From: Glycera tridactyla | Taxonomy: Eukaryota | Direction: 5' to 3' | Assembly: GCA_965644265.1 (NCBI GenBank) | Contig: OZ286475.1 | Coordinates: 43,834,001 to 43,898,000 of the forward strand | DNA: 64,000 nucleotides | Shown here: in pieces, positions 25,975-64,000 of the stretch | Numbering within the stretch: the stretch's first letter is position 1 | Layout of the letters: each line of letters starts with the position of its first letter | The notes under the pieces: model-generated | Database searches by the model: none | The model's input: the letters and a program-made list of their open reading frames with translations, nothing else | Told to the model about the DNA's origin: nothing | Program-made: the position numbers and the translations under genes

Positions 25975-28900
25975 TTTTTTAGTGATAGAAATCATGTCAG
26001 AGACATATTTCCAGATTGTACTGGCAACAGGTCCATGAAATGTGTTCCAAACGCCCAAATTATCTTTTGGCTTGTATGGGATTTGAACCATCAACCTTCC
26101 AGTTTGGCACCCTCGCCAGCAACAAACACACACACACACACATCCACAAACAAACACACACACACACACATACAAACACACACACAAATATGTATGTATT
26201 CTTATGTAAACTCAATAGTAGAATATATGTTCCACATTTCTGTGAAGGATTGAATAAAATGTACACAATATTCCATACCCGGTATTGCTCTTCAAGCTTG
26301 GTTGGCACCCCAGATTTTGGCGACTCTCTTAGGTGCTTCAAGTCTTTGTGGATGGTTTTGCTGTCCAAGAGTGTGTCAACACTCAGTGCCGCTTCCAACA
26401 ACACATCAAATATGAATCCATATAGTCCCTGGAATGAGGGAAATGGGAAACATCATGAGATTAGAGAAAATAAAGCACATAAACTTTCGCATAGGTCATG
26501 TAATTCTCAGATTTTTGTCTACATATTGCTATTCGAAAATGTATGACAGATCCAGAAAAAAGTAACTCGAAGAACAGACCAAGCTTAGGTGAGGCCTGAA
26601 ATAACAAATAGTGAGATGGCTTCATTCTCAACTTGAGATAAGCTGTAATAGTGATCCCCAGGAACGCATATTTAACAGTAATGTTCCAGATCCATTACAG
26701 TAATGAGTAGTGTACATAGATACATATCCTCTATTTGGGAAAGAAATATTTTGTAGCTACTGAAGCCATTTTTGAAGACTTCTCACCACCGTAGTGCGTA
26801 TCCATGGTCAAATGAACCTCTCGGACTGGAACCGTGGATTTCCTACATACGTGGTATCCATGGTGATAGAGTGATAGATATCATGTCAGTTTTTGTGGTA
26901 GTGGCGTTGGCAATGGTGGTGACGGTAGTTTGGTTGCTCTATTAGTAATAGTAGTGGAATTTCTCGTGATAGTACAGCAACTACTACCAATAGTAGTATA
27001 GCAGTCAGAGCAGTGGTTGATGGAGTAAACATGATATTAGTGGTTGTGGTGCATTGTAGTTGTGATGGTGGTGCTAGGAGCAGTCATGATCATCATAACT
27101 ATCGCTGTCCTGTAGCTACTATCATCAAAACACATGCTTTGGTGTTAAGATTTGGTTCTCTGGATCAGTTTTGGAAATACCCACAAGACTATCAACCATA
27201 TTGGCACGATCAGCTCTCATGAGCATGATGTATTGGGGAACATCAACGACACCTTCCTTCCTGCTCTTTTTGAGCTCGTGATTTATTGCAATAAGAGCAC
27301 CTGTACGACCAACACCCGTGCTGCAAGAATGAGTAAAGAAACAAATTTCAAATGTCATCATTAGTTGATGTTATTACCAATGATCTTTGTCAGGCACAAT
27401 ATTAAAAAAACTTATTCTTAATGTGTAGTGATGCACCAGTTTATTCCCACATTTCTAGAGTATGCCACAATCAGAATTTCTTTCTGATCATGTGAACTAC
27501 TACAGCTCTGAGTCAGTGATCTTATTTGATATGTAATGTCTTAATTGGATAGATGACGTGAGTACCCTATTGGTCAATTATAGAAGGAAATCATAATGCT
27601 ACTCAGAGAAGTTTAACAGTCCTGTAACCTGCCATTCAAAAAGTCTGTCAACATGTGGAGTGATATGGTGCCCCGAATAATGCAAGGGAACAGAGTGCAG
27701 ATACCTACATTACATTGATCGTGATATGACCTCGGGTACATACTAGATGAAAACAATCGACTTGTCAAGCATGGACAAAGGTAGGCTAAGAATTTGATGT
27801 GTGAGTATCATATCAACTGCAGATGATGAAATCAGGCTGTGCAAGCAGCAGGAGAAACTGTACACATTTTGCATACCAATGCATTGAAATGAATTTTGGA
27901 TATGCAAGATGATAACAAAACGATGGCGAATGGTATCTACAGGTAGGGGAAGAGTATGGCTAATCTAGTGGGACCTGTGATGCCAAACATGGACAGGGGC
28001 AAAATAACATACTACAAACGTTGGGTCAAATCAGTTGCAGTCGATGGTATCATAGTAATAGGCACCACTCAGAATGAAAATGATAGAGCATAACAGATGG
28101 AAATGCATTGTATGATGCCTCACTGTTTGTATTCCAGTATGTATACCGAAACCACACCAGTAAGGCTTCTAGCAATTCACAAAGTGAACAATTTGTACAT
28201 TGTAATGAGTAATTGCGATATGCACAATCGGTTTATGCAGAGTGATAACATATTTCCCAAATAATATTATGTGAAGTAGCTTAAATATGAGTTATTCATT
28301 GCAGTATATTTCACACTATATGATGTTTTCCAAAATTGCTACTGCGGCCTCGGCACTCCCGGAGGCCGTCGTCGCACCTAGTTGGAAAAAACGCCGATCA
28401 CGGCCCTGATCGGCCCACACTGGGGAGGTACTCCTTACTTTTCTCTCACAACCTTACCAACATGATTTTTAGGAAGAAATGGAATGCAAATGGTTTTTTA
28501 GTGGTATTTTGGTTCTAACAGGGTCGATCTAACCGACTGGAGGACGAACAGCGAGCAGGTGATACAGCTTGGTATAATTATTCAGAAAATGTATTCACAA
28601 AAATTATATTTTATGATCCGTAATCCCATATATTAGAATAATAATATGTTCCTAGGCTTGCAAATAATATTTCAGAATTTTTGATGCATGATGCATGTAT
28701 ATGCCAGTTGAATTTTGAGGGAAACTTGCTGAAAGAAACGAATTCATTCAAAGCCTATATTAGAATCCAGGGCGTAATTCATAATAGGGAGCATAAACAA
28801 ACCGGCAATAGGTGGTCGGCGTGGCTCAAGTGGTTAGAGCGCTGACCTCACACCACTGGGTATGCTAAAAGAGGTAAACGCTGGAGTTGGGGGTTCGATC

Positions 28901-31900
28901 CCTGCTCCTGCTCGGCAGCCTATGTGTGCGTTTCGGAACCGACCACCTGTGTGAACTCTAACACGTAAAAAGGCCTGAGTACATGATGAAATAGTGTGGC
29001 TGGCTATGTGATTCATGAGCGCCTGTCCAATAAGTCTGGAAACCATGGCTTGAGACTATAGGTGGCGCTATAATAAGTTACTACAACAGCTACAAGCACC
29101 ACCCTCTGCCACTGGCACTCCGGATCACACACGCACCAGGAGGAAAAGCCCGTATGCGGCACTAGCCCAGTCCAGAATCCTATCAACGCACTTAAAGCAA
29201 AAAGGAGGGCTTAGTGCACCCTCCGGTGGGCCCTTAGGGGCCCGGCCTTAATTGGCAAACCTTACATTATTATTAAACCGGCAATCGGCTATGTTTGTCA
29301 CGCGCACGGAAATAGCCGAGTGGGGGGTGTTTGATCACTTTCAGCTGTGGTCGTGAGAGAAATTGATACACACCTGCAATGGACCAGGAGAGGTCCTGTG
29401 CCTGGCTTGTCTTCAGCTAATATCCTCGAATGGAATTCCAATAAACTTGAAGAAGAGGTTGGTATAGTATCATGGGGCCATGCTGTGAACTGAAAGTGTC
29501 TTAGTCGACGAACCTGTCCCTGTAATAGCAGTAGTGAACGTTTGATGAATATATAACTTGGTGGAATTGTGTCAGGGATTTTACTCTGTTGATTTTCTAC
29601 AATACATCAAATGGCAAATGTAACTTCAGTCATTGCTGACTGATAGTGATGCGGTTGCTTTTGATGCCTCAAGTCTTTATTCTCATTCGAATGACCGCAG
29701 AGTTAGAGTTCACTTGAAGATCATGCAAAAATCACACTGAAACGGTCATCTCTCAAATATCAGTTCTGTCTTTGGTTAGAATGTTGATACTACATCTCAC
29801 ATTCAGTTGGGGAAATAGTGTAATGATCCTTCATAATGTCAAAGGCCACAGAACAACGACAATTGACCCAGATATTAGTACTGTAGGTTGGCCGGAGTGA
29901 GTCATGGGGGCTGGTCATATCTTTATAGCAACAAGGTCACTGCAAATGCCTTCCTTCTGAGATGATACATGCATTCACCAGCAATTCTTATATCATGTTT
30001 GCCATGAAAAATCTGAATTTGATGCACTGGGTTTTCAGGTAACACATAGAGAAAAATCATCATTCAGCCAGCTGAATAAGGTATAATTTCCATCCCACAG
30101 TCCCCAGATGGTCAATATATGACACATAGCTCAGTTTTGCAAGGTTAAGTTCTCTAGTTGTTGTTGTTATATGTTTTTATTCAAGAAAGACATGGACCCA
30201 GGGGTCAGGTTACATGCTTTCATGGTCATTATGTTATAACAACACTAAGAACAAATAATAACTGAACAAGGAACAAGGATTATGTGATGATGAGGGTCTT
30301 TCTAGTTTGAATGATCTGCAAACAGGTTTAGTGCTACATGAATCCAATCCATCTGGTTGTAGAGAGATTATACTGAACATAATCCACACAAATTTCTATG
30401 AAAACACTATAGGCGGATTCTATAAATCACTATGAGAGTACCCATCCCTTCTCAAGCATACATACCCATATATCTTCCTCGTTGATACTACATGCACACA
30501 TCAGCTGGCCGCTGATGGTCACACTCACTACTAGCCCTTCCTGTTGTTTGTGATTATAAAATTTAGGGACTGATACCAACAGTGATCGTCCCTTCCCCCT
30601 ACCTTACCCTGTAAATGACCTGGAATACTGCACACTGGCATTGCAAAAATTGGTATAGGCCATCTAAACATTAGGAGCATAATACATGAATAGGATGAAA
30701 TAACCATACTTCACCCACAGAGTGGCTTAGGTGTACTTGTGCTAACTGAATCCTTTCTAAATTCTTCAATTTCGGATGCAGAACTACAGATAACGTAATT
30801 TTGTAGAAAAATTGATTTTTGTGACGAAAGATAGGATAGTTATTTAGAGTAAGGGAAAAGCGTATAGCAGATTTATACTCGAGATGGCAGCAGTGAATAA
30901 TAATTAATTATTTTCATTTTGAGAATAGAAAGGATTTGAGGAGAAGAAGGATAATATGAATGTATTGATAATGATTGTATATGATTATGTTTAATAAGAA
31001 AAAGATTCTTATTTCAGAAGTTTGATTGGAATGTAGAGGGCTCAGCAATCGCAGTATATAAGCGGTGAGCGTGAGTCACTAGCTGACAACAAGGTATAGA
31101 CGGCGGTTGAGAGATTGTTTGTGTCGGTTTTTAAGGCGGGAAAAATGGATTACCTGTCACATTCCTATGAACCGTTGAGTCAATGGCTGGGTAGAAAAGT
31201 TAAGTTAGCGGTGCTCGGACACTCATTTACAAGAAGACAGGATGAGGATATGTTAGATGAAATAAGCAAAATGGGGAGTTATAATCAAGTCATGTCTGGA
31301 GAATTGCACAGAGGTAGGGTAAACGCAGGATTATTATGGGTGGATGACTTCGTGGACGTAGTAAATTTTCGGACATGTCCTTCCATAAAAACTTACGGGA
31401 AACAGGACAAAATTGAGTTGGAGTTTTTAGCTGTATCTGCTCTCAAACCAGACGTGCTGATAATTGACTTGGCTAGCAATGATTTGGTTAGAGAAGACGC
31501 AAAGCCAAGGGAACTTGCAGTATATTTGTTTGAATTAGGGGTCAATTTTAGGCTGGAAGGTATAGACATGGTAGTGTTTATGTCATGTCTGGATAGAATG
31601 GTGGGACCAACGGATCTCGGAAAAAGAGCCAGGTTATTCAATGATAAGTTGAAACAATGCTGTAATTATTCAAAAATTGGAATAGCATTACATGAAACAA
31701 GAGGTTTTGGCAGTCTGGAAGAGGAAGAAGAGTCAAAGGTACATTTATGGAGCAAGGGCGGGATTCACCCGTACCGATATAGCAAATATTTTCATAAATA
31801 TAGGTTAGAGATGAGGAAAGCGATGATGAAAGGAATAGTGGGACTAGGACATGTGCTTGTCCATGACAAATATCAGAGTTAGTCATTCGAGAATGGGCAT

Positions 31901-34900
31901 GGATTCATTGTATACATATGCATGTTGCTTAATATTTGTGGCTGTGCTTTGTAACATATGCTTTCAGATGAGTTGTAAAAGAAAGCAGGCCAAAGCGCAA
32001 GGAGATAGCAAGAGAAGGAAGGAGGAGAATCAGCAAGGTGATGTCAATGTGCATGTGTTTGTCAACCTATTAGAACCTGCAGGTTCGCAGGTTTGTGAAC
32101 CACAGGTGGGGTTACCATATGAGCATTCAAGTAGAAGCCAACAAGCTAGTCATGTTCAGATGACACAATCGGAAAAAGATAATAATGTTGTGCTTAGTAT
32201 GGGAGAAAGAATTGATCGTTTGAGGAAGCATGCAGCTGATGCTTGTTCGATACGAGCTAGAACATTTCCTGAAGGAAGTGGAGGTTTCACACAGAGTAGA
32301 AACGCACCTAATTATGCTCAAAATCAATCATTTCATCAATCATACCCATCACATCACACACAACATGCCCCAAGTGAGGTTCCTGTCCAGAATGATGTTT
32401 CAGGATTATGGAGTGAATTGCAGTCTTCATTTAACACAGCGATGAGACAAATGGACAACTTGGTTATGGAGATGGCTACTAAACAGAGTAAAATTAACAG
32501 CCTTGCGGATTTGCCGGGTAGACAGAAAGAATTTACTCAAAGTGCTCCATTTGAAGTCATCAATAATCAAGGTATGCATGATACGAGGCAGTATATTGTT
32601 GGGGATAGTGAAGAAGAGGAGGAGTATGGTTGGGTTGAACAGACAGATAACACACAGAAGACTGACAGAACGGACAATTTACGAACAAACAGAAACTTAC
32701 ATGAAACAGACAATACGTACAGACTATGGGTGAGTGATCAGGATCGAGGAGGAGAGGTGAAAGCGAGCAGCATGTCAAGGGGTAACTTTTTGTATAACAC
32801 GTTCAGTGAACCAAGCTCACAATTGAGAAACTCAATTTCGGGACAGGTGGGTCAATGGTCTGATAGTAATAATACGACACTAGGGGATATCTAAGAATCA
32901 TTGAGAGCAAATGTAAATGCTAAGAATCAAGCAAGTGTGTCCATGTACAACAACGCAGCAGCAGCAGCAGGCATAAGAGATTTTAATAATTGTCAAAGCA
33001 AAAGTAATAAGATATCACCGTTCAAACCAATGCAACAATATAATTTTTTGGGAAATAACTCTTCAGGGAAATGACAATAAAGGTAGTAACTTCACGCAGA
33101 TGTCACAAGGGTATAACCCAAATAATCAGCAACCGTTTGTAGGAAATCATATGCAAAGTCAACCTTTGAACATGCTAAATAATGTAAATCTCAACCACGT
33201 AAGTAGTCAGAATATGTGCCAAAATGGTGGGGATTTCAACAGACAATTAATAGGAAGTGGTCCCCCTACAAACATAACATTGAGTGATCTGGCAATGAGA
33301 AGTCTCATATCTGGCGGTATGCCAATAGGTTACAAGGTTGAGTTAAATATTAAAATAGATATTTGGCAAGATAAATATGTAGAATTATCTGAACTTTTAA
33401 AACCAACTAGATCAGATCAGCAACATTATGTAGTAGACGGAAGAACTGGAGAGTTTGTCTTAGCAAGGAAGAAAAGGTACATAAACACACTCAAAGATTG
33501 GAAAGAGGCTTTACTAGTATATATGGCCATATATAATCAAAACCCGGTAAAACATCCCATGCAGAAGGCTAAGGACGGAGAGGATTTGTTGACATACATC
33601 AAGGAGGTGAGAGGAATAGCATACAATGGAGGCAATTTTAAATTATATGAAGAAGAATTTCGTTCGCAGAGGGCATGTTTATTGGTCCCATATCCTTGGA
33701 GCGCATATCATGCACAATTACATCAAGAAGCTTCGAGACCAGTACCAAGAATAGGAAACAAATATCAAGGGGGATGGAATTCCAACAACAACACAACAGG
33801 TTTCAGTGAGAATGTAAAAATGCACAAAGGGTGTTGTTCTTCATTTTTAACACCAGGTAGAAGATGTGTTCTGAGTAAATGCATATTTAAACATGAATGT
33901 CCGGTATGTCATTTAAAGCACCCCTTATTTATGTGCAGGAACTTTACCAACACAAGAAACACAAACCAAAACGCTGCTAGAACAGGACAGGGAGTTAAAA
34001 GAAAGTCTGCTTCATCCAGCGACACCGGTAGATCACCAGAAGCTATGTGAGTGGTTATATGGATATGAAGAATCAGAAAGATATTATCTATCTGAAGGTT
34101 TCAGAAGAGGTTTTGATATAGGTTTCGTAGGAGCATCACCAGCATACTGAGCTAGGAACTCAGAAACTATAAATTTGCAGTTTAGTGAAGCCCGAGATTT
34201 AATCATGGCAGACGTGAAGCAAGGGAGAATAGCAGGACCATTTAAGGAGGTTCCCTTCAACAATTTTCACATATCACCAATTTCAGTGGTTCCAAAAAGG
34301 GAAGAAGGAAAATTTAGGCTCATTCATAATTTATCATCTCCTTACAACCAATCATCTATTAACTTCAATATTCCGGATAGGGAGGCATCGGTAACGTATA
34401 TGACAGTGGACGATGTAATAAAACACGTTTTATATATAGGAAAATCTTCATATCTGTGTAAAGTTGGTATAAAATCAGCCTTCAGAATAGTGCCCGTTCA
34501 ACCAGAGCAATTTCACTTATTAGGATTGAGATTAGGTGATATCTTCTTCGTGAATAAATGTTTGGCCATGGGAGGGAGATCATCATGCAGGATTTTTGAA
34601 TGGTTTTCCACGGCTATTCAATGGATCACAAACAACAAGTTGGGTATCCCTTTCATGGCTCATATGATTGATGATTTTAGTATAGCAGCAGAAGGGGAGG
34701 CAGAATGTTTGAGGCAATTGAATGTATTTAAACAATTCTGTAAGGAAGTAGGAGTGCCACTTTGTCCTCGAAAAACAGTTTTACCTCGTCAGATTATGGA
34801 TTTCCTAGGCATAGAAATAAATGTGAGAGAGGGGTATGCCAAAATACCTAAGGAGAAATCAAATAAATATGCTCTACAAATTTCAGATATTTTGGAGGCA

Positions 34901-37900
34901 GGGAGATGTTTATTTGGAGACATGAGATCGTTAGTGGGTAAACTCAATTGGTGCGCTTCGCTCATATCAGTGGGAAAATCCTTTCTCAGGGGACTGATCA
35001 GTAGCTCAAAAGGATTGAAAAACCCAGTTCACATGGTTAATTTTTCCGAGAATGTTAAAGAGGATTTGGAGATGTGGATGGTATTCCTTAGGGAATATAA
35101 TGGGTACTCATATCTACGAGATAGAACACTGCAAAAAATGGAAACTCTTTATGTCTTTTCGGATGCATGTAAAACAGGTGCAGCGGTAGTCTTTGGAAAC
35201 CCATGGTTTTTTATAGGATATGATGAGAAGAGGTCAAAAATGAACATTGCAACGTTGGAATTTTTTCCTATCTTGGTGGTGGTAGTGACATTTGGGCTGG
35301 CATTCAGAAATAGGAAAGTCGCGTTTCACTGCGACAACAAGGCAGTTGTAGATGTACTCAGTAGAAGGAGAGGAAAAGACGTAGATTTGGTAAAAATTCT
35401 CAAAAGAATAATGCATCTATCACTACATAATGATGTGGAGATCAATTGTGAACATATTCAAGGTGTTAAAAATGTCATTGCTGATCAATTATCACGGGGT
35501 CAGTTGGGACAGGAACTTCTGTAACAGAATGGGATGGCTATATATCCAGTACCGGTTCTGCAGCAATATCTCCCGGAGAACTATGGTCTTTAGTAAACAG
35601 GTTGGTTGAAGGGTCATTTGCTGAAACGACAAACAAACAATACGACCTTTCATGGCAAGAATTTCAAGAGTTTATCTGGGAAGATTCGTTAGCAATATGT
35701 CACGAAACACTATGTTTATATGTAGCGTCTTTGTTGAAGGAAGGTTTCAAAGTTTCATCAGTGAGAACAAAATTGTCAGGTATTTCTCATGGCCTAAAAA
35801 TAAGAGATAGTCAAGATATATGCAAGCATTATATCATAAATAGGATGCTAATTGGAGCAGGGAAAAATGATGAGCAAGGTGATAAAAGGATAGGTATAAG
35901 ATGTTAAGACAATTAGTACAGGCATATCCGATAGTCACAAGTGATAACACAGAAATCATCATGTTCAAAACTCTCTTTGTATGGGCGTATACAGCATGCA
36001 TGCGAGTATCTGAATACGCCAAATCAGGAAAAGCTGACCACACGCTGACAATGAACGATTTACAAGTAGCGATGTGTGGAGAGGAGGTGGAAGCATTTCA
36101 AGTCAATTTCAGAACGTTTAAGTGTTCGCATGGAGAAAGGCGGTTTGTAATTACAAAGCGTGAGGGTGACATCTTGTGCCTGGTAGCTAGAATGGTGGAG
36201 TGGTTGAACGATACAGGGCAGGGTTCAGGACCGCTTTTTCGATATAAAGGCAATGCGGTGACAGCGAAGCTAGTCAATGAGAAGCTAAAGAAAATAGTTA
36301 GGTTTGTGTTAGGGAATGAAATAGCAAATAGGGTTTCTAGTCACTCGTTTAGGATAGGTAGGTGCACCGATTGGGTTGAACAAGGGTTCACGGGACAGCA
36401 AATAAAATTAAAGGGTAGATGGGCATCAAATGCATTCAAGTCCTATGTTAGGTCCCCTGCAGTCCCCTTGTAGTGGGCTGCTTAATTGCTATGTATTAGT
36501 GGGGTAGCGCGGCCATCTTTAAATTTCTAAAATACAGATAGTGTCAACATTGTCAATACATCGTTCACATAGTCACAACTTCGTTCACCATGAACTGTCG
36601 TGGCAATGCCACATGTCGGACATATCATGTCCCTGTCGTTACCAAGGCTGCTAGCTGGTTAGCCATTTTTTCACAGGAATAATTTGTGAGAAAGTGGGTA
36701 GACAGTTAATATCTTTGTAACGCCACGTTTTTGAACATGTGACGTTTGTTAGAATAACATGAACAATATAGGGATTTCTGGTAGCGGAATTCGCGGAATT
36801 CCTCTTTTGAGGCCCGCGGCACTAGTTTAACGCTACTAGATTGATAATTATTTCTTCCTACTCCAGAAGCATGAGATAGTTTCACTTCTATTAGTTGAAA
36901 ACAGTTGCAATCCTGTTAGTTTTCTAATATTAGTAGTTTCACCTATCTGGTTGTTGGTGTGGCAACTAGAGTTCGAGTTACACGCAGTGTACTCGCCGTT
37001 CGCGGCGGGTGCCCAGCTTGCAGTGTTTTTAGGGTGAAACAGTAAAAATGCGATATCTCCATGAATAATGGACGTAGGAAGACCATATTTTTACACGATA
37101 CGTATCTGTATTAGGGCTAAAGATATCCCGAAGATGGGAAGTGTATCTTTCGAGGCAAAATTGTTAGTCGGACGGTTTTTTGCCAACATAGTTGATCACA
37201 CAGTATAGTGAGCGACTCCCTGAGCAGGAGGAGCTCGGAGTCGCGCAGGAGGAAAGTGATCTGCAATGTACATGCAATGTACATGTTTTCTCAGAAAATC
37301 TTCTGTAATTGATCTAGAAAAGTCTCGAGCGAATACTTTCGAGGTAGCTGACTCGAGGAGCTTGACATCGCTTCTCCCGCTCTTTTTTCCCGCTCTTTGC
37401 TGGCTCTTCAGGACGGATACATAAAAGTATTCCAGACAGGAGTTCTGGCACTTGGAAATTCTGTCCTGAAGAGTACGCACCGGAGCTGAGGGAGTCGGGA
37501 GCAGGGAACATCTTGCTTCTCCAGTATCGCTGCACTGGAATAGAAACAATGGACTCCACTACATCATCCTGAGCTCTACTACATCCAGTAAGTGTTCATG
37601 AGATTTAGAACCGTTTTAGGATCCTTTTAGGAGGCTTTATTAGGAGTCATTTTCCCCATTTGCCCAAATGGCCATTTTTAGTATCATGCCATTTCATGTC
37701 ATCGGATCTTCTGTGTTTTGTATTGAATGTACCGTCTTTCGAGCATACGTGGTCAAAATCTAGAATTTGCATGTTTTTGGATGATTTTGGATCATTTTGG
37801 ATGATAGGATTTTGTTCCATAAATGCCGTCCTGATCCAAACAACTAGCTGATAATTCTCGCGGATATTGGTAGTTCTATCTGTTTCTGTTAATTCCCTGT

Positions 37901-40900
37901 GCTGTTCCGGTGATTTTGGAACAAGTGGAACTGCGTGGAACTATGCCGTGTTCCTCCTGCGTTGTTCCCGGTGCAGTACGCCTGTTTGGGTGGAACAGGG
38001 CTATGCAGGAATTTGTAATATAGTATTTAACGCTTGGACTCACTGAATCCTCCGGGTGAGAGAAGCTGTGTGTATGAACTGCTAACACGTCTCAATATAG
38101 CTCCTACCAATCAGATTCTGATCATTTGTGTGATATATCGGATTTCTGTGTGAATTAGATGATTGAATCATTCAAAATTCAATTATATTCACGGGATTTC
38201 CTTATAGGAATAATATTGTGAAAGGAATATTTCTGTAAGATCATTTTCAGTTGAAATATCAGCAGAGACGACTGTGTCTTTTCTCTCTGAATCTGTGTGT
38301 TTTAGACCCGGCTACTCTACCAGTCCATGTGGGCTGAGTTGAAATGAACATGCCTATCTAGGTATGACAATGGCAGCTCGCTGTCATGTGTACTAACCAG
38401 GTCACCGCTGAGGTGAACTCTGCTGCTGGTTTCGTAAATAGCACACACAGCTGATCTGTTTTTCTTTAGCTTCCCTGATCATATGAATAGAGATCCAGTC
38501 AATCTTTTCTTTTCCGAGTGAAATTCTTTATTGAAAAACGTATTTTCATTGAAACGGCTTGTTTTGAGAAGGTAATAATCTAACGTCGTTCATATGGTGT
38601 GAAAATCTGGAATTCTTTGACGGTTAACCGATCGATTAATCGATTAATCGACCGATCAAATATGCTTCAATTTCAGTTTTCTGAATTTATTTCGGCTTGC
38701 AAAAAGCTTGTTTATAAACGTTCAAGTGCTAGTTTGATGGTATTTCAATTTCCATGACCACAACTGTCGTATTTGTCAATTGAAGATCCGGTGAAATGTT
38801 TTTGGTGCTCGTACTTGTAATAGACATGTAGGGGAGACGACAAACCGAGACTTGTTTTGTTTACACGTAGTGCCTGCTTGTGATTCATGTGCCCGGCCTG
38901 AATTTAGACTTTTTCAGAGAAGGTCCACTCTGATAAGCTTGAATTCCGTCCTAAGCGCAGTATATCCTAAGCACAGACCCGTCCTAAGCTTGCTTAGTCT
39001 TGTGTAATGTCCCTGAGTCTCGTGACCTACTTTTTGAATGAAACCTCCGTATTGAGACCAACCTGTCACATGTGACCACCGTGAGATTTTTGATCCATAT
39101 GATCTGCGACATCACGTTGGGCTGTATTTTCGAAGGAAAATTCTTTTGAATTGATTTTAGACCTTCAAAATGCTGCATTTGTAATTGTTTTGCTCTCGTA
39201 ATGAATAAGCTGCAATGCGCTGTCATTTGAGCTCCGAGATACTTTCTGAGCGATCTGGAATGAACAGCTGTTTCTGACTGATCGGTCAGATGTAAACAAT
39301 CCGCCATTTTGGATTTCCATCCGCCACATGTATGAGCCTCACTTTGAGCCTCCGATCCACTTTATACTTTTCAACAAGTTTGAAACTTTTTCACTTTTGG
39401 ATAAAAGCTTTAGATGCTTTAGAATTGATCGGAACTGTTTCTCGTTATGTGCGGATTGCTTTTGTAGAACTTCAGTGTGCTGGCTTTAGCGCTATTTGTG
39501 ATTTGACAGCGCGGACTTAGCGCGTTGACTGAAACTCAGCACGGTGCTTACCGGACTTACTCATGGTCTTACCTAGTAAGCACATTTGTGTTTGAGGTTT
39601 GTGACATATGGGACTGCATGTAAATGCATTTCGCTCTTATATTTCTGGAATTACATGACTAATTTCGACTTTAGACATTACCAAATGGCTTGAAATGAGT
39701 TGAAATTGGGATTTGGTGAATTTTAGAATTCGAACTTAGCACGGACTTGGTAGATCGGAACTTAGACCCCGCTGCTGTTGCAGCTGTGACTTAGTTCGTT
39801 CCCGTCTATGTTAGGTAGGTCATACTCACAGTGTAAGGGAGGGGGAACTTGGGTTGATTTCAGATCTTGCCTCTTGCTTCGGTGAGTGGTGACTTTATCT
39901 GATACTGTCTACAAAGACCACCTGTTCTGAATAGATTGATTTCTCTATCTTGGATTCTTAACTTAGAATTTATTCAAATTTTTGAATTTGATTTGATGAG
40001 GACTTAACTATTTTTGATTTGAAAAGCGTGCTAGCTCTTTTCATGCAGACAGTTGGACGTCAACTTTTTCGCTGTATTGCTGCTGCATCATGATCCCAGC
40101 TGACTGAGAGAGGACTTGGTGTGTTCACCTTTCTAGTTCATTTCCTGTGAACTTAGCTCTCTCTGATACAGCTGATGATATTTTAATGCCTTGTTCATTG
40201 ATTGATTAACTTAGTTGGCTCAGTGCCTGCTCCGTTGATAATGGCTTAAGTGCATTGAGATTTCTTTTCAACGGTGATACTTGCTGATTGTCTTTTGACA
40301 ATCTCTTCAACTGAATGTTGAAATATTTCTAGTAACTTGATCAATGGTAACTTGTAAGTTAAATTCTTATGCTATTTAGTTAGTGGGGAATAGAGTGGGA
40401 TCCTGCCTTCCCACTATAATAGATCTGGCAACTGCAAGTAACTAAGTGCACGCAACAAACATAAATAAAAACTTAGAGTTGTTTAAAGATACTTTTTGAA
40501 TTAAAACTTTTCTTTATGATACTTGGACAAGTTGGTAGGAGACTTTTTTTTATCTTCTTGCAGCGACCAACGCGTCTGAGATGTCGTAAATTGAAGAGGT
40601 GCGTACTCTTCAGGCCACTCCATTCCCACGTCGCCTCCCAGGCTTATGGGAATCTACTAATATAGGCGGATATGCCTAGCCGTCGTCTGCACAGTCTTTA
40701 GTGTGTTAAACGCACTATACACATGGGAGATGTGTAGGACATAATCTCTTCACACGGTGAGATGCTGTTAGCTATCTTTACGAGATAAGCTACTTCACTC
40801 GAGAGGAATGATGTCTCCTCTTTACTTCTACTTCCATCAATGATACGCGTCCTAGTATCAGCTACCATCAGTCTCTAGCTGATATGGATATATAACCGAA

Positions 40901-43900
40901 GTTCGTCATCACATGTGCAACTAGGTGGCCACCAATATATTAACTTTTAAAGTCGGTCTTTCATCGTGGGTCTTTAACCCAAACTTTTAAAGTCAAATAT
41001 CTAAAGTGCACTAACTATCTAGACACCGTGTCTTTGACTTTGTTTATATTTCTAGCTAGCTGCAGTGGCCACTTCTCAAGCGCCCAAGTCAACGATGGAA
41101 CAAGAAAGAAGATAGTACTATAAAAGGGTTTGAGCTCAAGTGTGTGACTGTTTGAGTGTGTACTTGTATAACTCATAGAGGTACCTCACTTTGTCATTCG
41201 GCCATGAATATCTTGTGTATGAGTATGTCGTGAGTTGAAAAATTCTGGTATACCACTGGTATTTATGTAACACGAGTTCATCCATATTTGTCATATTTGT
41301 ATATGATTCAGATCTGAATATTTGAAATGAATTTATTCATTACATCATGAGTATAACTGACATTTTGTCTACTTGATACTGTGATAATTTATATTGCTTC
41401 ATTCAATTTATGATCTACCATTTACAATCTACCTACTATGTGAACTTATACAAATTAAAATATGTATCTACAACTCTATTTATGTGTCATCTTATACTTT
41501 TGAACCAACAATTGAGTTCCCTGTGTGATGAAAGAGATGTCTTTATAGATTTATGGTTTCATTAGAGCTGGCAAACAATGGGATTCAACATGTAATACTG
41601 ATCGCGCATTTTAACATCTTTTAGTACAACGTATATATTTTTGTGAACATCGATCCACAGGAGCAATGCCATTTATTTTGACATTGGGATAAATGGGGTA
41701 AAAGCCCGGTTAACCTTTACATTGCTTCCTGCTGTTCTTGATAATGGTAATTTAATCAGATATAAGCTTCTTGCCAAGGTTGCATCTTAAGGAAGAGGAG
41801 GGAATACTCCTACAAGCCTGTCGGATGACTGGTTCAATTCCATTGTCATATTGGAAGGATTACATCTTCAAGATACAGCTATTGGATAACTGTCAAAGTA
41901 TCATACTTCTGGTTTATAGAGCTTCTAGGCATGCAGTTTAGGAAGGGGTGTCAAAAAGGCAAAATGGCCAAGTCAAGTGTGCCTAGAGGCACATGGGTTG
42001 TAACTTTGTAAATAAATTGCCATAAATTATTGAATATGTTTTGCGACTAGTTATTTGCATGGAAAGTGAGTCTTGTGTGTGAAACGAATACACCTTGATC
42101 AGATCTGATAGAACCTTAGCCTCTGGCAAATTGAGTGGAGGAGGCGTATTAGTATATGCCAGTCAGGCACATAACTACCAGCTAGTTGAAAATAGCTGTA
42201 TCTGTGATAGTAATATAGAACTGTTGTGGATTAAATTAGAACTACCGCAAACATGCAGTACCTATATCTGCTGTGTTTACAGACCACCTGACGGAAACTT
42301 AGATGAAGGATTAGATACACTCTCTGATAGTTATGACAGTATAGTTGGGACGCAAAGGGCTGACGTTTTAGTGATTGGCGATTTGAATATCAACACTCTG
42401 ATCAAAAACTCTGCAACACGGAAATATAATCCAGCATGGACAAACTACAGTTGAGTCATTTAATCAAAACTCCGACAAGAGTAACATCATCGAGTAGTAG
42501 CTGCATAGATCATATCCTTTGTAATAATGAAAATCAATTTTCCTACAGTGGTTGCCTGGATCCAGGACTCAGTGACCACAGTATGGTTTTCACGTTTAGA
42601 CAGCGCCAAAAGTATGACACTAGGAAAGAAAAAGTTAGTTTTAGATCTTACAGGTCCTTTAATGAATCACTCTTCCAAACCGACATCAGTAACATGCCCT
42701 TCGTGATAGCAGATTATACCGATATCAATAAAGCAGCTAATGATTTTCAAACAGAAATGACGAAAATCTTAGATGTACATTTGCCAGTGAGGTGTTCATC
42801 ATGGCGTGTTCAAAATACATTAGATTTTCAATATTCTACTATATCATGGTTTCGTTCATACCTCTCATGTCGAATCCAATCAACAAAATGTAATGGTTGT
42901 ATCTCTGATTATGGTCATCTCACATGTGGAGTGCCCCAGGGTTCAATCCTGGGGCCCCTTCTTTTTGTGGCATACATAAATGACCTGGCGACGGTTGTTA
43001 ACCGTGGTCAGGTATTTATATATGCCGACGACACTGCACTACTAGCTAAAGCTGATACTGAGACCGCACTCCGTGAACATCTGGAAACAGATATGTATTC
43101 AATCGAGGCCTGGCTAGTGAAAAACCAACTAACACTAAACAGAGCCAAGTCCAAATCTAGGGTGTTTGGAACAAATGGTAAACTATCTTCCATTTCTAAC
43201 AACCCAAACCTAGCAGGATTTGAACGGGTAAGCAGTTTTTGCTATCTAGGCGTGCATGTAGAACCCGTCTTATCATATAAACCTCACATAGAATATGTGG
43301 CTGGGAAGGTTAGATCCAGGCTTGGCCTATCAAGACAAGTGAGACCCCTTATCAATAAGGACTTGTCACTGTATTTGCTGAAGAGATTGATACTCTCTAT
43401 ATTTAATTATGGGGGTGCAGTCTTAACTGGTTTATCACAAGGCTTATCAAATCAACTCGAGGTCCTTCTGAATACTGGCCTGTGTATCTGCTAACCGAAC
43501 CACCATGTACACCTACTGCAGATCTATTGTTGGAAGCTGGCCTTCTCAATCTTGAGACGGCCACGTCATTCCACTTGCTATGTGAATTCTTCAAGGTTAA
43601 GGCTGGAAACTGTCCTGGTGGCTTGAAGAAAAACTATGACGACCTGTTTGGTGCCCCACCCATGCATAACACAAGAGGGGTGTCACACGGAGACTTGCGC
43701 GTCCCTAGAACGAGATTGAAGATGTGTGAAAGGGACTTTTTCACAAGGGGTCCCAGTTATGGAATCACTTATCGATAGATATGAAGCAATCTGAGACTCC
43801 TGCCGCATTTAAAAGAAAACTACTCAAGCTCCTTTGTCCTGCACGGACAAGACGCGTATACATTTGTGAAATTTTGAATATTGTTCGCATGCACCTACAT

Positions 43901-46900
43901 CCAATTTCTGATATCATCTTCAATGTAGGGTCTGCGTTATATTACCTTGTATTACACAATGTCATTTCCCATTTACTTTACATATGTTCATGTACCAAAT
44001 ATTTACATGCTGCTATACTTGTCATTGTGCAATCTTGTCTCATGCTTTTGTGCTCCACTGGGGGAGAAATAGTCACTGTACCTCCCCAGGGGGGCCTAAA
44101 TAAAGTTTTCAAATTCAAATTCAAATGTCAAAGTTGCACATGGTTTGCAAGTAAGGCATCATGTGTCACAGGTATATTCTCCCTCTAATGATGTAGATGA
44201 AACAGATGAAATGCACACCTTGTTTGAAACCTTGAATGTGCGTATAACATAGTCAGCAAACTTCTCCAAAGCTTTGATTGAAACTTGGATGTCACCATAT
44301 GTCTGAACGCCAATCTCCGGCCAATACTGATCACATTGCTCCTGTAGAACGAAGGAAATCATATACAGTGAAACTTGCTTGAGTGTAAATCTGCGCTAGG
44401 CAAAATCCTGTCTTAAGCACGTACCCCATGGTCTGCCCGGATGTTTTTTCCTCACTATAATTGTCCTGCGCTAAGCAAAATCCTGTCTCAAGTGAAAGAA
44501 AGATTTGGTACCATGACTTTTCACTTAAGACAGGTTTTACTGTATGTGTACATTAAGGATCACAGCAATTTAATCCCTTATCTACCAGGAGATCCGTAAT
44601 GTACATCGGTTTGGAACATTGGGAAGAAAGATTCAAGCAATTTGATGAATGAATTCATATTATAAGGGTTGTATCGGATTGAGATCTATATGGCTATCGA
44701 ACAATGTAATATTGATTCATGCATCCTGATGATACTATTGAGATCTACGTATAATGTCTAATCTTGAGTTAACAGTCATGCAGACATCTTGAAAAATTTG
44801 GGATTGTGAGGGGTTGGAGTAAGTCTTGATTGAAGGCTTGTAAAAGTATGTCTGAACTGTCACCTACTTCCACTTGACCGGCTCCTGGAGTATGTGAGAA
44901 TGATGCTGGGAGGGTGCCAGAGCATCCAGCTATATATAACCAGTAAAGCCAACACCCATAGTCCTATGGGTTGATACATGCCATCAAACCCCAATCACTT
45001 ACCTCTCCAGCTTCGACCAAGTCTGTGAGCATTACTACACGGTGCACAATTTCTTGCCATATCATCTGCCAGAATACAGGAAGGTTATCAGTATGGGGTC
45101 CTTGGCAAGCTATGTATCCACGAGGCTTGTCCTTGTCGGCCTGAAAGAAGAACAATTCCGTACATATATCTATCCATCCACCCAGACATGCATGCATCAT
45201 TCCATCTATCCATCCATCCATCCATCCATCAATCCATCATTTCATACATCCAACTGCTTTTCGGTGAATGATAACAAGGTATATCTGTCCAAAATTTATC
45301 AACATTGGTCTCCGGTGATATCCCATTCGCACCTTCAGCTTTTCAGGAACTACTCTACCTGATACCATGTCACAACATAACACTGTGGCAAAAAATTCCT
45401 AATCCCAGGAATAGCACCTGTAGTGTCTGTGAATTTCATAAATTGTCAACTATCACTATTAGTGTCTCAATGTATCCAAAATGGTGCTCGTGGGACACGA
45501 AAAAAACCAACCTGCAAACTCACTATTTCAACCAAATGATTGATCAGAAGCATAGTTTTCTGGACAGAAACTTTGCGTGTGAGTTGTGCCCAGAATCTGG
45601 ATGATCCCATCTTAAACATACAATGATCAGTCAATCTCTGGAATTTCCATGCAATCAGCTTGTGACAGTAAAACTCTAATCGAATGAGGATTAGTGAAGT
45701 GAGTGACTAAAGCATATCTATGTTCGATGTTTGCATCATTTTTGACAAAAAATATATGACTTTACTTTGGAACACTTAATGATTGTCTGCATTCCACTGC
45801 ATGTAGCACTAAATGTGCCAGGCAATAAAATTATCACACAAAATACAACTTGGCATTATCCATAAACATCTAATTCCACCGGCAGGCTGTCCTATTGTAG
45901 CCAACGATCGTGGCATTTTGTATTAGAAATCAGGTCCCAATTTTTTGTTACATTCAAGATAAAGAATACTTGGTAGCGGATTTGGCTAATGTTTTCTCTG
46001 TTACACAAACTGAACAGCCTTCTAGATGAGATACTGAACCACCAGCAACATGTTTTGGATACTATAAAGTGAAAATGTACGTACCCTAATGTAAGATGCA
46101 TTGATATAACCATCAGGATTACCACCTTCCTCTGCTGCAGACTTCACCACAATGCGAGAATGGTCATCTGGAAGTAAACATCATCACAATGCAAAATGGA
46201 CAGATCAACCCAACCCACTTCTTGGCTGATGCCAACATTTATAATCCCCAGTATGACCACCTTTTTCTGCTGCAGACTTCTCCGCAATGCATGGATGGTC
46301 ATCTGAAGGTGTTCATCAACACAATTTAGAATTACTAAATCAACCTGACCCATTTCCTGGCAGCAGATAGGACATATGCCATTGGACTGATGACAAAATT
46401 TATTCATCCAATTGAACTGTCAATTGAATGAATGATATCAACATTTTTCTTGCCTCAATTGGTCCTGTTCAATTTTTCTATGAAATGTCCTTTCCTTTAG
46501 GTTGCTGATTTTTCACTTGTGTCATTATACACAACGGTAGTGCCAGCCACACCAGCTCTTAGCTTCACATGTATTCACCATTTCTTGTACTAGTGCTTTG
46601 ATCAAATTTGATCTATTATCAAAAATACCCATGAAATCCGCCACTTCATTCTTCGATTTCGGTTTTAGCATTGTCTATCACCAGATACAGATATCACTCT
46701 CATTGGGTTTGAATGCTATTCTTTCTGCATCAAAGAAGTTATAGATACTCACATGCTAGTATTCCATGTAGTCTATTCGATTCAGGATATTTAGAAGCTA
46801 CTGCACAACTGGCAATGTACCCTGTTGGCAGAGTCTGAAATAAGGACAAGACAAAAGATGGCAAGATATGATCCCAATTTTCCGGCAATCAATGTTACAT

Positions 46901-49900
46901 ATAGGTCATCATTACCTCCAGAAGTGACTCACGAAGTGCAAAAATACCATTGCATACCTTATATGCTGCAACTAATACAGTTCCAGATAATATGGCCCAT
47001 GATTAACTTAAAATCATTATCATGGTTGGTGAATTTTCAGCTATATTCAAAACAAGAAATTCTACCTGTATGAAATTCAATATCTATCCCATTGAATAAA
47101 TCATTTCATGTTTAAGTCATCGCATGAAATATTGTTCTGTCATATTCACTCTTTAGAGAAAATCCATACTCTTGTTGAGGAAGAACTATTAGATTTTGTT
47201 GTTGATTGCAAATGATCCAACCAGGTGCATCGCACGAGAGTCTCATTGTAGTCCTGGGGTTACTGTTGTCACAAACAATACACCAAACTCACCATCATGA
47301 TGACAACCACCACCACCACCAACACCACCACCGCCACGATCAAATTTATGACCAACGCCACTCACAACAATGCAAACTAAGAGCTTTAAAGAATTCGATC
47401 TGCATGATGGCCTCAGTGAATGTCACAACTGTGTCTCTTTTCATGCTATGACTGCTGAAGGCGAGGTTGTTTTCATTAGGTCAGATGGGAGCGAAAGACG
47501 TGCAGAAAGGTGAGACAGGGGGAGAGAAGTCAAGAGAGGGATAGTGGGGAACAAGAGGCAGGATAGAGAGAGAGAAAAAATGGGAGTGGGCAGAGATACG
47601 TAGCAATATGGAATGTGTCTTCCTTTTTCGAAAGGTGTGAATGGGTGAGATATGTGTGTCCTATCATCAAACGGGAAAGAACTATATCCTCTCTTCTATT
47701 GATTGCCCTTGCGGCAAATTTGCCTTCCAATTCTGGTCTGATGTGATATGATGAATTATGTTTCTTCTTGGTCCACTTATTCTACAAAAGTTGGTCAGAG
47801 TTGATCAATATTCAGCTGCCTCACTTCGAAGAATTGCAGTACGACTTGAAATCCAACAGAGACAGATTGTTTTCTGATGAGCTTTGATTATTTTATATTC
47901 ATCGAATATTTGCAAGTGTATGCAGCTTTAAAGGTAGCGATGATAGAGAATCTGTGGAGATTATGGATTTTTTTATCTGTGGATATATGTTTGAATGTTA
48001 AGGCCTTAAAAGTCTGCTAAGAATATTTTTCATCGAGCTGGTGACCTACAATGAGATGTCTGTGATTTGGTGTGGGCAGACCATGCAAGTATCAGATCTG
48101 GGATACCTCTTAACTAGAGTGTTGAGAAATGAGTCCACTCTTAAAGTCCAAAGTGCTGATAAATACACTCCATGATGGGTTATTGGGCAAAGTTCCAGGC
48201 CCAGTATGGGGAGTATCATAATCAGATGTTCCAACTCCAAGTCCCATCTTCTATCTCTAACTCCCAGCTCCTAACTAACTCAAATTCACAAATAACTCAC
48301 ATTATATTCTCTGAGTCCCTGACTGAGAACTCCTCTGATCCACCCCATTGGGTAAAAGCATTCAACCAATCAAAATGAAGCAATATCCTACAGGTAGGCT
48401 ACAGGTAGTTGTTCCACTTCACTCACTTTCCAGGCCTGCTCACTAGCCCAGAGCTGACCGTATTGATAGATCCAATTAACACCCCCACTACCCCTACATG
48501 AGGGAGGCTGGGTGATGGCTGTACAAAATGGATGAGGGCACTTGAAATGGTCTAATTACAGGAGGGGTCTATTGAACATGAGGGAAGAAACAATTGGACA
48601 ATACCACACAGAGACTTAATGAGATTAAATGGAAGGCCAGATGTGGGTCCACATGAAAAGAAGGTAAACTGGCCCTATACATATTCCCCAAATATCAAAC
48701 TTCCATTACTATTCATTAACATTTCATAAAATCATTACTTTTCCATTACTGCCAGTGAAAACCAGTGAAACCTGCTGAAAACCAGCTCACAAGTTCTAAC
48801 CGGCATTTCCTACTTCACACAAGGGCTTGAGTAGGAGGGGAAAACGAGAGAGGGAAAGGGATGCACATTGGGGAAGTGAAATCACATGGAGTTCCTTCCT
48901 CACGGAATTGAATGGTTATGTCTGATATCCATGATATCCTGCAAAATCGTACATACCGCATAGTATTTTTTCAGGATGGCTTGATTATCCTGGTGGAGGA
49001 CATCAACTCGGTCTACCAGCTGGGATACAGGTATGGGATACGACACCGGTGTCATGACCGGCCAGTATGTATTGGCATCGTCCATCTCGACAGCATTGTC
49101 ATGCCCCTGTTTTGCAGTACTAGATAGTCGAGCTGGTTCATCTAAAGATGGTGCATTGCCGATTGATGTTGAGCCATCTCTCAGCTGTAGACCAGTGTAT
49201 TCAGGTTCTACAACACAAAAATAAATTATTTCACTTACTCTAGTGTCTGCACACCATTCGCATTGATCGTTGCACACATCAGGCACACATTCAAATAATT
49301 GAATTTTTGACATGTTCATTCTTACATATTTTGTAGGATTTGACAATCAGGATGTAAGACATCTTAGATTCAGTACATCTTTTCATGTGTACTCTGCTAA
49401 TTAGACAAATGAATTCAAGAAAATGATTCTTCAAAAAAAAGGAGAAAATGACTGGGGTCATCATTGAAGTTCAACAGAGTTATGTAGTCAGTGTCAGTTA
49501 CAGTATCAATTTACCAGTCTGGGCACACAGGGATTGATATGATTTTGTGAATTCACTGAAACAGATACTGAAGCAGATACTGAGATATGCATTGATTATA
49601 GTCTGAATGAGAGATGGTTCGAATGAAATCGCTACATCTGGTTGGAAAGCAAAATATTGTGACAGCATTGTCTGCTATTTCGTGTGTCAGTATTTCTAGT
49701 AACTATAGTGCCATAAGATAACTCAAATGACAATAAGTAAAAAAATGTTCATGTCAAGGTTACCAAAGGATAACTCGAAAAAGATATTCATGTTGAGTTA
49801 CCGAAGGATAACTCAAATGAGAAATCCATGTCTATGGTCGAGCTAGAACACCTTCTGGTGCTGAAATTAGCAATGGGCAAATATGTAGATTACTGTATTC

Positions 49901-61069: not shown

Positions 61070-61509
61070 CTGTAATATTTTGACAGTTTACATAAATAAG
61101 AGGATCGTATCATTCATTCATGTGCGTATCAAGACTATCCTATACCTCTCCTGGTGTCCCAGTGGGAGATAGATAGATAATTCTTTTTCTTAGGCAGTAA
61201 GAGGGCAAGAAAGACTACCTTATACTGTGACCTTATGAGATGCTGTATTGTCTGTTCACTATTATCTAACTTGATGGCCATTATCCCAATTTTGTACGGT
61301 GAAGAAGGTTTATGGCAGTTTCAGCAAATGCCGCTGATCTGGTTGAGTGAGGTAAGGTCATGATGAAGGTCATGACAGTTGCAGTTACAACATGCGTTGT
61401 GGGAGCACATGGGTGAGTTTGAGGTGTGTGGGTATGTTAGTGATAATCAAGCGTGCACGTACTCCCCCCCCCACACACATCATCCTTTGTGTGTGCATGT
61501 GTGTGTGTG

Positions 61510-62653: not shown

Positions 62654-64000
62654 GCGCTGGCATTTCCCTCTAGAGAAACACCAGTTCCTGCTTTTCGTTG
62701 GGTTTTTGGGTTTGTCCATGGTGTTGATTCCCATTGGCAGGGATGAACGGAGTCTGTGGATCCATCAGAATTCCATATGATCTCTGAGTTCCCCTGCATA
62801 CTGAGCATCGGGGAATGCGTAGATGAAGTCCAAGATGTGTACCTGGATGTCGTCCCTTCCCCCATGGTCAGCTTGTTTGAAATGTCTGCTGATATCCGTC
62901 TGTTGTCGTGGATCTTTTGATTGGATTGTGTTCATGTGTGCCTGGATGCGGTCCATGCAGCGTAATTTCGTTTGGCCCACATATTGCATATTGCAAGTTT
63001 TGCAGGTTATGCAGTATATTAAGTTGTTGCTCTTGCATGTGACATCCTTTCTGCTCACGTATTCTTGTCCCGTAGCAGTACTGCGAATTCGTCCTGATCT
63101 GTCCAGGATTTTGCAGTATCGGCAGTTTTTTGTTTTGCAGCGATTCCGCGATTCACAGTTTTTGGTTTGATTCCGCTGCCCTTCATTCGTTGGGGTCACT
63201 GGTTTTTGTGGGGTGATTTTCGCCGAAACCAGTTTGTCTCTCAAGCTTGGTGGCCTACGGTGGCCGAAAGTGAACTCAGGGTTTTCGTAGTGCTTGACCT
63301 GCTCAGTATACCCCAGTTTTTCGTGACCATTGATTTCACTCTCAGGAATCCTGGGTTGTATGTCGTGATCAGAAAGACCCGGTTCTCGTCCTCGCTTTCT
63401 AAGGGCCTGGCTGGCATAGATAAGAGTGTTTTTCTCTCTATGAGCAATACCTTTTTGAAGCTTTCTGCAATCAGATCTTTTGGGTAGCCTCTTCGTGTGA
63501 AGTGGAAAGCGATCATCTGGCTACTTTTGATGTAGTCCTCGTCTCGGCTACTGATTCTTCTAAGTCTCAAGAATTGGCTATATGGGAGGCTCTTCTTGTT
63601 GTGTTCCAGGTGTGCGGACTTATAGTGTAAGTAGTTGTGACTGTCTGTCGGTCCATATGTTTCCATTCTCCAGGTGGATCCTCATGTCCAGAAAGGGGAT
63701 CCACTCTGTCGAGTTCTCGTAAGTGAATTTGATCGTGGGGTGGCATTCGTTGAGATATTGAACAAATTTTCCAAGTTTCTCAAGCCCATGTTCCCAAATG
63801 ATCAGACAGTCGTCTAGATATCTCTTGAAGAGGCGTGGTGCTGGTTTGTATGGCTATACAAACTTTTCTTCAAAATCGGCTATGAAAATATTTGCCAGGC
63901 TAGGAGCCACTCGTGTGCCCATTGCTGTCCCTCCCACCTGCAGGTATTGGTTCCCATTGAATTCAAAGTTATTGAACTTCAGGACATATTCCAGCAGAGT
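62654..64000 (-). mobile_element. Penelope-like element (RT + GIY-YIG endonuclease), decayed, continues beyond the window
   Basis: [68 protein letters not shown]...PMGIN. Stops at 63854 and about 62765, plus frameshifts near 63660 and 63244. Confidence 0.93.

Follow-up and report, generated by a model that had tools for sequence, protein, structure and literature searches.

PTPRU has been described as the only human receptor protein tyrosine phosphatase (RPTP) that has two pseudophosphatase domains. This R2B receptor has been called "a redox sensitive pseudophosphatase": its first phosphatase domain (D1) is inactive, with a WPE motif, a P-loop that contains Thr and a phosphotyrosine (pTyr) loop that is disordered, and it forms a Cys-Cys disulphide upon oxidation, binds substrates of active paralogs and was not restored to activity by any single reversion (PMC7320164). 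Here we analyse a 64,000-nucleotide stretch of the Glycera tridactyla genome (assembly GCA_965644265.1, contig OZ286475.1, positions 43,834,001 to 43,898,000 of the forward strand), which we call the window and from whose first letter all coordinates are counted. Its minus strand carries a tandem-domain RPTP gene that probably encodes a membrane receptor pseudophosphatase acting by binding or scaffolding, perhaps under redox control. An earlier note, made from the letters of the window, had proposed a double pseudophosphatase at this locus.

In the protein tyrosine phosphatase (PTP) reaction, Asp181 protonates the leaving tyrosine, and Gln262 and Gln266 place the water that frees the phospho-Cys. 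Mutation of PTP1B lowers kcat about 10^5-fold for D181A and about 100-fold for Q262A (PMC10267100), and Tyr46 determines how deep the pocket is and stacks against the ring of pTyr (PMC7320164).

Six of eight catalytic positions are changed in D1

The gene is intron-rich and animal, in a window of about 40% G+C. We found its exons from stop-free segments with PTP motifs and a Pfam scan, followed by direct reading of splice sites; exons were searched one by one and concatenated once, for the stop count only. Fifteen cytoplasmic exons, from 48957-49207 to a TGA at 16714-16716, are all flanked by AG/GT and together comprise 637 codons with no internal stop. Exons B-H encode D1 and a linker and exons I-O encode the second domain (D2), with an unbroken reading frame across both PTP domains (exons L0 and L' being tentative). 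The phases 0-1-0-0-0-2-0-0 over B-H are repeated over I-O, such that D1 and D2 are mirrored, and two exon pairs are equal in length (D and K, 138 nt; G and N, 136 nt). Matches to PF00102 come in colinear order from five segments and cover profile positions 11-221 of 234, with scores of 42.6 bits for exon D, 26.9 for E, 35.5 for F and 35.7 for G (cut-off 20.9); exon C, at 18.5 bits, lies below the cut-off. The exons up to the D1-D2 linker, with the evidence for each, are:

48957-49207, minus strand: exon A, juxtamembrane region to the start of D1 (AG/GT flanks, phase; juxtamembrane region of P0139 weakly matched by tblastn)
46753-46834, minus strand: exon B, pTyr-recognition loop, SNRL (sequence; alignment with P0130 and P0153; spacing to YDHSR as in relatives; phase)
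46085-46167, minus strand: exon C, (Y)DHSRIVV...GYINASYIR (PF00102 positions 11-39; splice sites)
45003-45140, minus strand: exon D, YIACQGP...VFWQMIWQ (PF00102; splice sites)
44219-44341, minus strand: exon E, EQCDQYWP, with Lys120 changed to Gln and the backdoor Cys kept (PF00102; a contig loose end at 29521 reads the exon E end)
29374-29519, minus strand: exon F, WPD-loop exon to GPLLVHC (spliced contigs in runs X1, X2 and X3)
27185-27320, minus strand: exon G, (S)TGVGRTG P-loop, in which Thr stands for Ala, then the Q-loop's first half, in which Asp stands for Gln262 (GT..AG joints 27320/29374 and 26427/27184 in three runs)
26279-26428, minus strand: exon H, rest of the Q-loop, Leu standing for Gln266, then the D1-D2 linker, ending EEQYR (spliced contigs; loose end reads the start of exon I)

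The pTyr-recognition motif reads SNRL instead of KNRY (46769-46780, exon B) and is followed by HGILA, a Tyr codon split T/AT over the B/C junction (slashes mark exon boundaries), and DHSRIVV. Relatives read PENKAKNRYGNIVAYDHSRV in this region, and the window loop is two residues shorter. Exon B alone gave no significant database match, and only chance matches against the PDB; its assignment comes from its position and spacing beside YDHSR. The WPD loop reads WPHD (29469-29480, exon F). In the PDB alignment, WPHDTIP stands opposite WPDHGVP with no gap, the matching PTPsigma/LAR D1 stretch being FQFTAWPDHGVP; His therefore occupies the general-acid position and Asp lies one place later. The hinge Gly183 of this loop is changed to Thr. 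The P-loop HC/S/TGVGRTG runs over the F/G junction (CAT TGC AG at 29374-29381, then C ACG GGT GTT GGT CGT ACA GGT at 27299-27320); it has the HCX5R(S/T) signature with both Cys and Arg, and Thr replaces Ala217 (HCSTG). The Q-loop reads VDSL/GLY, with VDSL at the end of exon G (27185-27196) and GLY at the start of exon H (26420-26428), where relatives read NMVQT(L)EQY.F..D.LLEA. Finally, Lys120 is changed to Gln at 44336-44338 (QCDQYWP), the window reading EEQCDQYWP against KKKCEQYWP in relatives.

Overall, D1 is changed at six of eight catalytic positions (Y46L, K120Q, D181H, A217T, Q262D and Q266L) and keeps Cys215 and Arg221. The same eight-position check on 72 D1 domains of tandem-domain relatives found 57 fully canonical, with Asp181 in 70, Gln262 in 65, Gln266 in 69 and Tyr or Phe at position 46 in 66; only two of these 72 reach five differences. 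Given this conservation, the motif losses of the window D1 exceed chance expectation. The D1 domains of relatives share 56 columns with at least 85% conservation, of which the window D1 keeps 39 over its aligned part; with the exon ends added by eye, about 43 are kept and about 13 changed. Three of the changed columns are V/I/L swaps and the rest are mostly active-site residues. The P-loop glycines are retained, as are the backdoor Cys in QCDQYWP and the majority of the motifs that define the fold. Because the acid, Tyr46 and both Gln are all replaced, very little canonical turnover of pTyr is to be expected.

The motifs SNRL, WPHD, HCSTG and VDSLGLY, as well as the loss of the acid, the Tyr and both Gln beside a retained Cys and Arg, had been put forward in the earlier note; all are present in the minus-strand sequence, the F-G and G-H junctions lie in spliced contigs, and the scoring against 72 D1 domains of relatives bears out the pattern. 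The range first given, 27185-46834, stops short of GLY in the Q-loop and leaves out D2 altogether, and the changes at Lys120 and Ala217 had not been flagged.

D2 lacks the P-loop arginine

The remaining seven exons encode D2:

25273-25363, minus strand: exon I, start of D2 (start read in loose ends of X1 and X2; splice sites)
24512-24585, minus strand: exon J, D2 (splice sites and phase; placed by order and pattern only)
21651-21788, minus strand: exon K, D2 (tblastn to relatives' D2; 15.7 bits to a D2 hidden Markov model (HMM); splice sites)
20903-21040, minus strand: exon L0, D2, tentative, PISSCWPTT...VVDTSQ (strong acceptor, CAG/GTAATG donor, phase 0 to 0; alone no Pfam match)
19478-19632, minus strand: exon L', D2, tentative, WPD-to-Cys, SRDWEADSS...GPTIIMC (D2-HMM positions 159-203, 6.6 bits; acceptor TTTTTTCAG; donor AA/GTAGGT, phase as in exon F; alone no Pfam match)
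18533-18668, minus strand: exon N, D2 P-loop, (K)DGVAHSG (PF00102 27.2 bits; D2-HMM 40.1 bits; tblastn to many relatives' D2; splice sites)
16714-16788, minus strand: exon O, C-terminal end and TGA (splice sites; relatives stop at an equal place, ..YANFQ or ..YANFV)

The D2 P-loop reads IIMC/K/DGVAHSG, in which Arg is changed to His, so that the HCX5R(S/T) signature is absent, and the His before the Cys is changed to Met; the place of the WPD motif is taken by DWEAD. Relatives' D2 domains are also without the P-loop Arg (CRDGASQSG, CRDGVTKSG and CMNGASKSG), and a dead D2 is therefore a family trait. Judged by their residues, D1 and D2 both look non-catalytic, in line with the double pseudophosphatase first proposed.

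Public reads support splicing and suggest constraint

We aligned four public runs with positions 26000-30000. Contigs came from X1 (organism A, study P1) and from X2 and X3 (organism B, study P2), and in this interval they cover exons F, G and H only. They join 27320 to 29374 and 26427 to 27184, precisely where the gene model has its junctions and with GT..AG intron ends for the minus strand, and their loose ends read into the end of exon E and, in X1 and X2, the start of exon I; intron depth is nil except at repeats. A processed DNA copy present in both organisms would be an unlikely source of such contigs.

Between 3.4 and 4.1% of exon positions differ between the organism B contigs and the window. 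Among the 14 differences listed in exons F-H over the three runs, nine are synonymous and five are replacements (R>K, L>M, S>T, S>L and L>P), all mild and all in loops. The 9/14 count, against a neutral expectation of about 75% replacements, gives a binomial P of 0.002, which is indicative only because the listed differences are a subset. Two of the changes in X3 fall within WPHD itself, CCC>CCT in the Pro codon and CAT>CAC in the His codon, and both are silent. Together, the open frame, the splicing and the synonymous excess on the listed subset are indicative of a gene kept by selection although its catalytic residues are lost.

The window D1 groups with gastropod RPTPs

We searched 1.84 billion representatives exhaustively with exon F (phmmer) and obtained 351 matches, none above 56% identity on exon F, and no protein among all those fetched exceeds 58% identity to any exon. 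The best matches, aligned back to the window with tblastn, reach about 40-45% identity per exon, and the named relatives are lophotrochozoan RPTPs (Lineus, Liolophura, Littorina, Plakobranchus). The best solved matches are the R2A PTPsigma/LAR D1 domains.

We built a FastTree phylogeny of 72 D1 and 25 D2 domains plus the window D1, for which the exon peptides were profile-aligned singly and overlaid by column. The window D1 groups with a Littorina/Nucella cluster (labelled "epsilon-like" at source) and P0039, with support of 0.86. By this placement with gastropod RPTPs and by its best solved matches it is not an R2B/PTPRU ortholog, a judgement that took in no MAM search outside the FN3 exon. 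The window exons score 191 bits against a D1-HMM and 134 bits against a D2-HMM; because the D1 profile outscores the D2 profile, the domain is a D1 by descent, and a duplicated D2 in the D1 place is ruled out. The sole other WPHD among the matches, in P0026, belongs to the D2 of a LAR-like fragment, which is hence no relative of the window D1. The best explanation for the locus is a functional, transcribed tandem-domain RPTP gene of a lineage-specific invertebrate family whose nearest clade is the gastropod RPTPs, and our best reading of the pseudophosphatase state is that it arose independently of PTPRU, with the P-loop Thr in common.

These data bear on several points of the earlier note. 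An intact, spliceable gene had been claimed, and is found in the 15 exons and 637 codons without internal stop and in the spliced F-G-H contigs. For the splice model, which it proposed to check by RNA-seq, the contigs over positions 26000-30000 bore out the F-G-H joints and the facing ends of E and I. On constraint, which it proposed to gauge with orthologs and paralogs, the listed run differences are mostly synonymous, and the searches above gave no ortholog.

A receptor pseudophosphatase is the favoured reading

We favour a receptor pseudophosphatase because the turnover residues are lost while the fold, the backdoor Cys and the cradle formed by Cys-X5-Arg are kept, as in PTPRU. D1 has given up the residues of pTyr hydrolysis (the acid, the stacking Tyr46, Lys120, Ala217 and both Q-loop Gln), and the protein would most likely bind partners of its active paralogs as a scaffold or decoy anchored in the membrane, turning nothing over. 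A redox-reactive Cys pair, formed by Cys215 and the backdoor Cys, may persist by analogy with human PTPRU.

A number of points weigh against this reading. Both the loss of activity and the non-catalytic action are deduced from sequence. The acid position holds His, not Ala, and this His or the Asp in the next place might still protonate the leaving group. The P-loop Thr is a further case, since PTPRK A1093T alone is not inactivating (PMC7320164). The RNA nature of the public runs is judged from their exon-only coverage and is not on record, and their read support covers exons F-H with the adjoining ends of exon E and of exon I (30 bases of the latter). The synonymous count draws on 14 listed differences, out of a total that is 33 for X2 and X3 alone. 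The searches yielded no ortholog in which deep conservation of the odd motifs might be read, and the terminal branch of the window D1 (0.84, against a median of 0.34) also fits relaxed constraint.

In a rival view, the gene is a recently disabled paralog, still transcribed and evolving near-neutrally. The long branch, the lack of an ortholog among the 1.84 billion representatives, introns rich in retroelements and in minisatellites made from exon ends and, immediately upstream of exon N, an F-type pseudo-exon interrupted by an in-frame TGA would all suit such decay. Neutral decay is nonetheless unlikely because of the open frame and the silent changes: 637 codons in 15 exons carry no stop or frame break, all splice sites are canonical, fold motifs are kept with changes concentrated at catalytic positions, synonymous differences prevail between runs among those listed, and the stop codon is placed as in relatives. 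Equally small is the chance of a natural substrate trap, as had been suggested earlier, in which D1 would bind pTyr proteins tightly and retain them in the manner of the engineered PTP1B D181A/Q262A. As in that trap, the acid and Gln262 are lost and Cys and Arg are kept; a trap needs an intact pTyr-recognition loop, however, and here Tyr46 is changed to Leu, the Lys and Asn before it are replaced, Gly stands for the Asn that follows the Tyr (the place of PTP1B Asp48), and the loop is two residues shorter. The damage to this loop, which the engineered trap keeps (PMC10267100), should weaken pTyr binding and makes a pure substrate trap doubtful.

A D1 that is still an enzyme, with altered chemistry, is unlikely but has a better claim than either of these. 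It would use the His or the shifted Asp as its acid and, with a pocket made shallower by Leu for Tyr46 and by the shortened loop, act on something other than pTyr, for instance a phosphoinositide or phosphoserine/phosphothreonine. Cys215, Arg221, the P-loop glycines and the nearby fold motifs are strictly kept, and the WPHD codons show silent changes only, which points to selection on the exact loop. There is also a parallel in PTPRQ, for which PMC7320164 cites a Glu in the WPD motif that accompanies changed substrate specificity, and which, according to PMC5336234, dephosphorylates phosphoinositides. On the other side, the pair of Gln that positions the water is gone, so that release of the phospho-Cys should be slow, and the change of Gly183 to Thr together with that of Lys120, which contacts the WPD loop, to Gln speaks against normal loop closure. 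In a stronger form, to which we give only a slim chance, a rewired His-Asp, a stiffer Thr loop and a shallow, Leu-lined pocket would make D1 a phosphatase, or an enzyme with a long-lived phospho-Cys, for a non-pTyr substrate; if true, a cell-surface receptor would carry the classical PTP fold in a new catalytic variant. Against this background, we hold to a receptor pseudophosphatase as the likely product of the gene.

Upstream exons, introns and neighbouring sequence

Two candidate exons lie upstream of exon A:

60747-61076, minus strand: candidate extracellular FN3 exon (Pfam fn3 28.2 bits, cut-off 25, in the stop-free segment 60717-61109; tblastn to relatives' FN3 repeats; gene membership from position only)
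57126-57210, minus strand: candidate transmembrane exon (top hydropathy upstream, Kyte-Doolittle 2.98 over 20 amino acids; AG acceptor, TG/GTAGGT donor)

The phase of the transmembrane candidate is incompatible with a direct join to exon A, and the interval between them contains N-runs; because the phases do not join, at least one unseen exon should lie between the two.

Several introns contain copies of exon sequence. The intron after L0 holds a minisatellite at 20113-20942 with an 83-bp unit in 10.1 copies (94% matches); the unit consists of the last ~40 nt of L0 with its CAG/GTAATG donor, such that about ten copies of that donor follow one another behind the exon. Directly behind exon K, at 21416-21662, are 47-bp and 22-bp periods, by eye units of about 100 bp that copy the 3' part of exon K and its donor, a second instance of an exon end amplified into an intron. 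Upstream of exon N, at 18669-18841 (perhaps to 19174), lies an in-frame copy of a WPD-to-Cys-type exon with a TGA at 18755-18757. This pseudo-exon abuts exon N without an intron, its former junction TGCAG/G now serving as the acceptor of N, and it is closer to the D2 of P0140 than exon L' is; it may have originated by intron loss followed by replacement, or by a cDNA-like insertion. A broken D2 was considered and rejected: the chain I-J-K-L0-L'-N-O is open and mirrors D1, and the in-frame TGA sits in this intronic pseudo-exon. Past the donor of exon H, the frame stays open on the minus strand over 26192-26278, ending ..LSLHKNTY, and tblastn aligns this stretch with the GKNRF/HKNRY D2 start of relatives. 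It is either a relic of a longer old exon or chance; the contigs splice at 26279.

The 14.7-kb intron between exons E and F carries two elements on the plus strand, antisense to the gene: a tyrosine-recombinase DIRS-like retroelement at 31023-36473, with RVT_1 in 34175-35524, and a long interspersed nuclear element (LINE) fragment with endonuclease and RVT_1 at 42095-43494. At 62768-64000, on the minus strand, a Penelope-like element has open reading frames that resemble reverse transcriptase and, after them, a GIY-YIG match that is weak (18.5 bits, under the cut-off); it is placed upstream of the RPTP gene or inside one of its introns. At the other end of the window, two Cys-rich EGF/laminin-EGF-like exons on the minus strand (2034-2246 and 2507-2611; FGAGCIYPCHCDDPDETCDTDTGECPISGCEDG) have their matches in the N-terminal ectodomains of P0153, a gastropod RPTP, and of P0090, P0092 and P0151. 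They probably form the 5' portion of an adjacent RPTP paralog, located downstream of the gene's stop, whose PTP domains would fall outside the window.

Comparison with known systems

Among non-receptor enzymes, PTPN23/HD-PTP, PTPN21 and PTPN14 (PMC7320164) resemble the window D1 in an altered residue beside Ser216, an incomplete Q-loop, and an altered WPD or pTyr loop. These proteins are, however, cytosolic and carry one or two defects each, whereas the window D1 combines all four. The engineered PTP1B D181A/Q262A (PMC10267100) shares the loss of the acid and Gln262 and the retention of Cys215 and Arg221, but retains Tyr46, Lys120, Gln266 and the length of the loop. The D2 domains of relatives (n = 84) show similar residues, with Leu at the position of Tyr46 in 11, a residue other than Asp at position 181 in 59 and Asp at Gln262 in 8; unlike these, the window domain is marked as a D1 by its position and profile score, and a separate D2 follows.

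Degenerate D1 domains are also found in other library proteins, namely Ciona savignyi H2Z467 (P0032; KNRS, WPMN, HCNDGSSRTG), Mya arenaria XP_052805472 (P0050; WPYN), Tegillarca granosa KAJ8302870 (P0059; WPRQ/WPKQ) and Opisthorchis viverrini OON23010 (P0055; KNRC, WSEN). These proteins, all uncharacterised, likewise have a D1 without the acid Asp, often with further losses, in which Cys and Arg are kept. They differ from the window in lineage and in their substitutions, with no His-Asp swap in D1 and no double loss of Gln. Since such degenerate D1 domains recur, receptor pseudophosphatases may be a recurrent outcome of RPTP expansion.

PTPRU, named as a precedent from the start, is a fair one. 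It too is a tandem receptor in which both D1 and D2 are non-canonical, with the Thr of HCSTG (PMC7320164), a replaced WPD Asp, a divergent pTyr loop, and retained catalytic and backdoor Cys. It is not an ortholog, and it differs in having WPE with the Q-loop and the KNRY Tyr retained, where the window has His and a shifted Asp and has lost the Tyr and both Gln; moreover, the inactivity of PTPRU was measured and that of the window D1 is predicted. The gene would thus represent the same end state as PTPRU, reached independently in an invertebrate RPTP family and with more complete losses at the sequence level. It also poses the question of whether a His at the acid position supports catalysis. 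With the Cys-Arg cradle and the backdoor Cys still constrained, the window D1 offers a natural comparison for what selection keeps in a dead D1, be it phosphate or partner binding, redox sensing or scaffolding.

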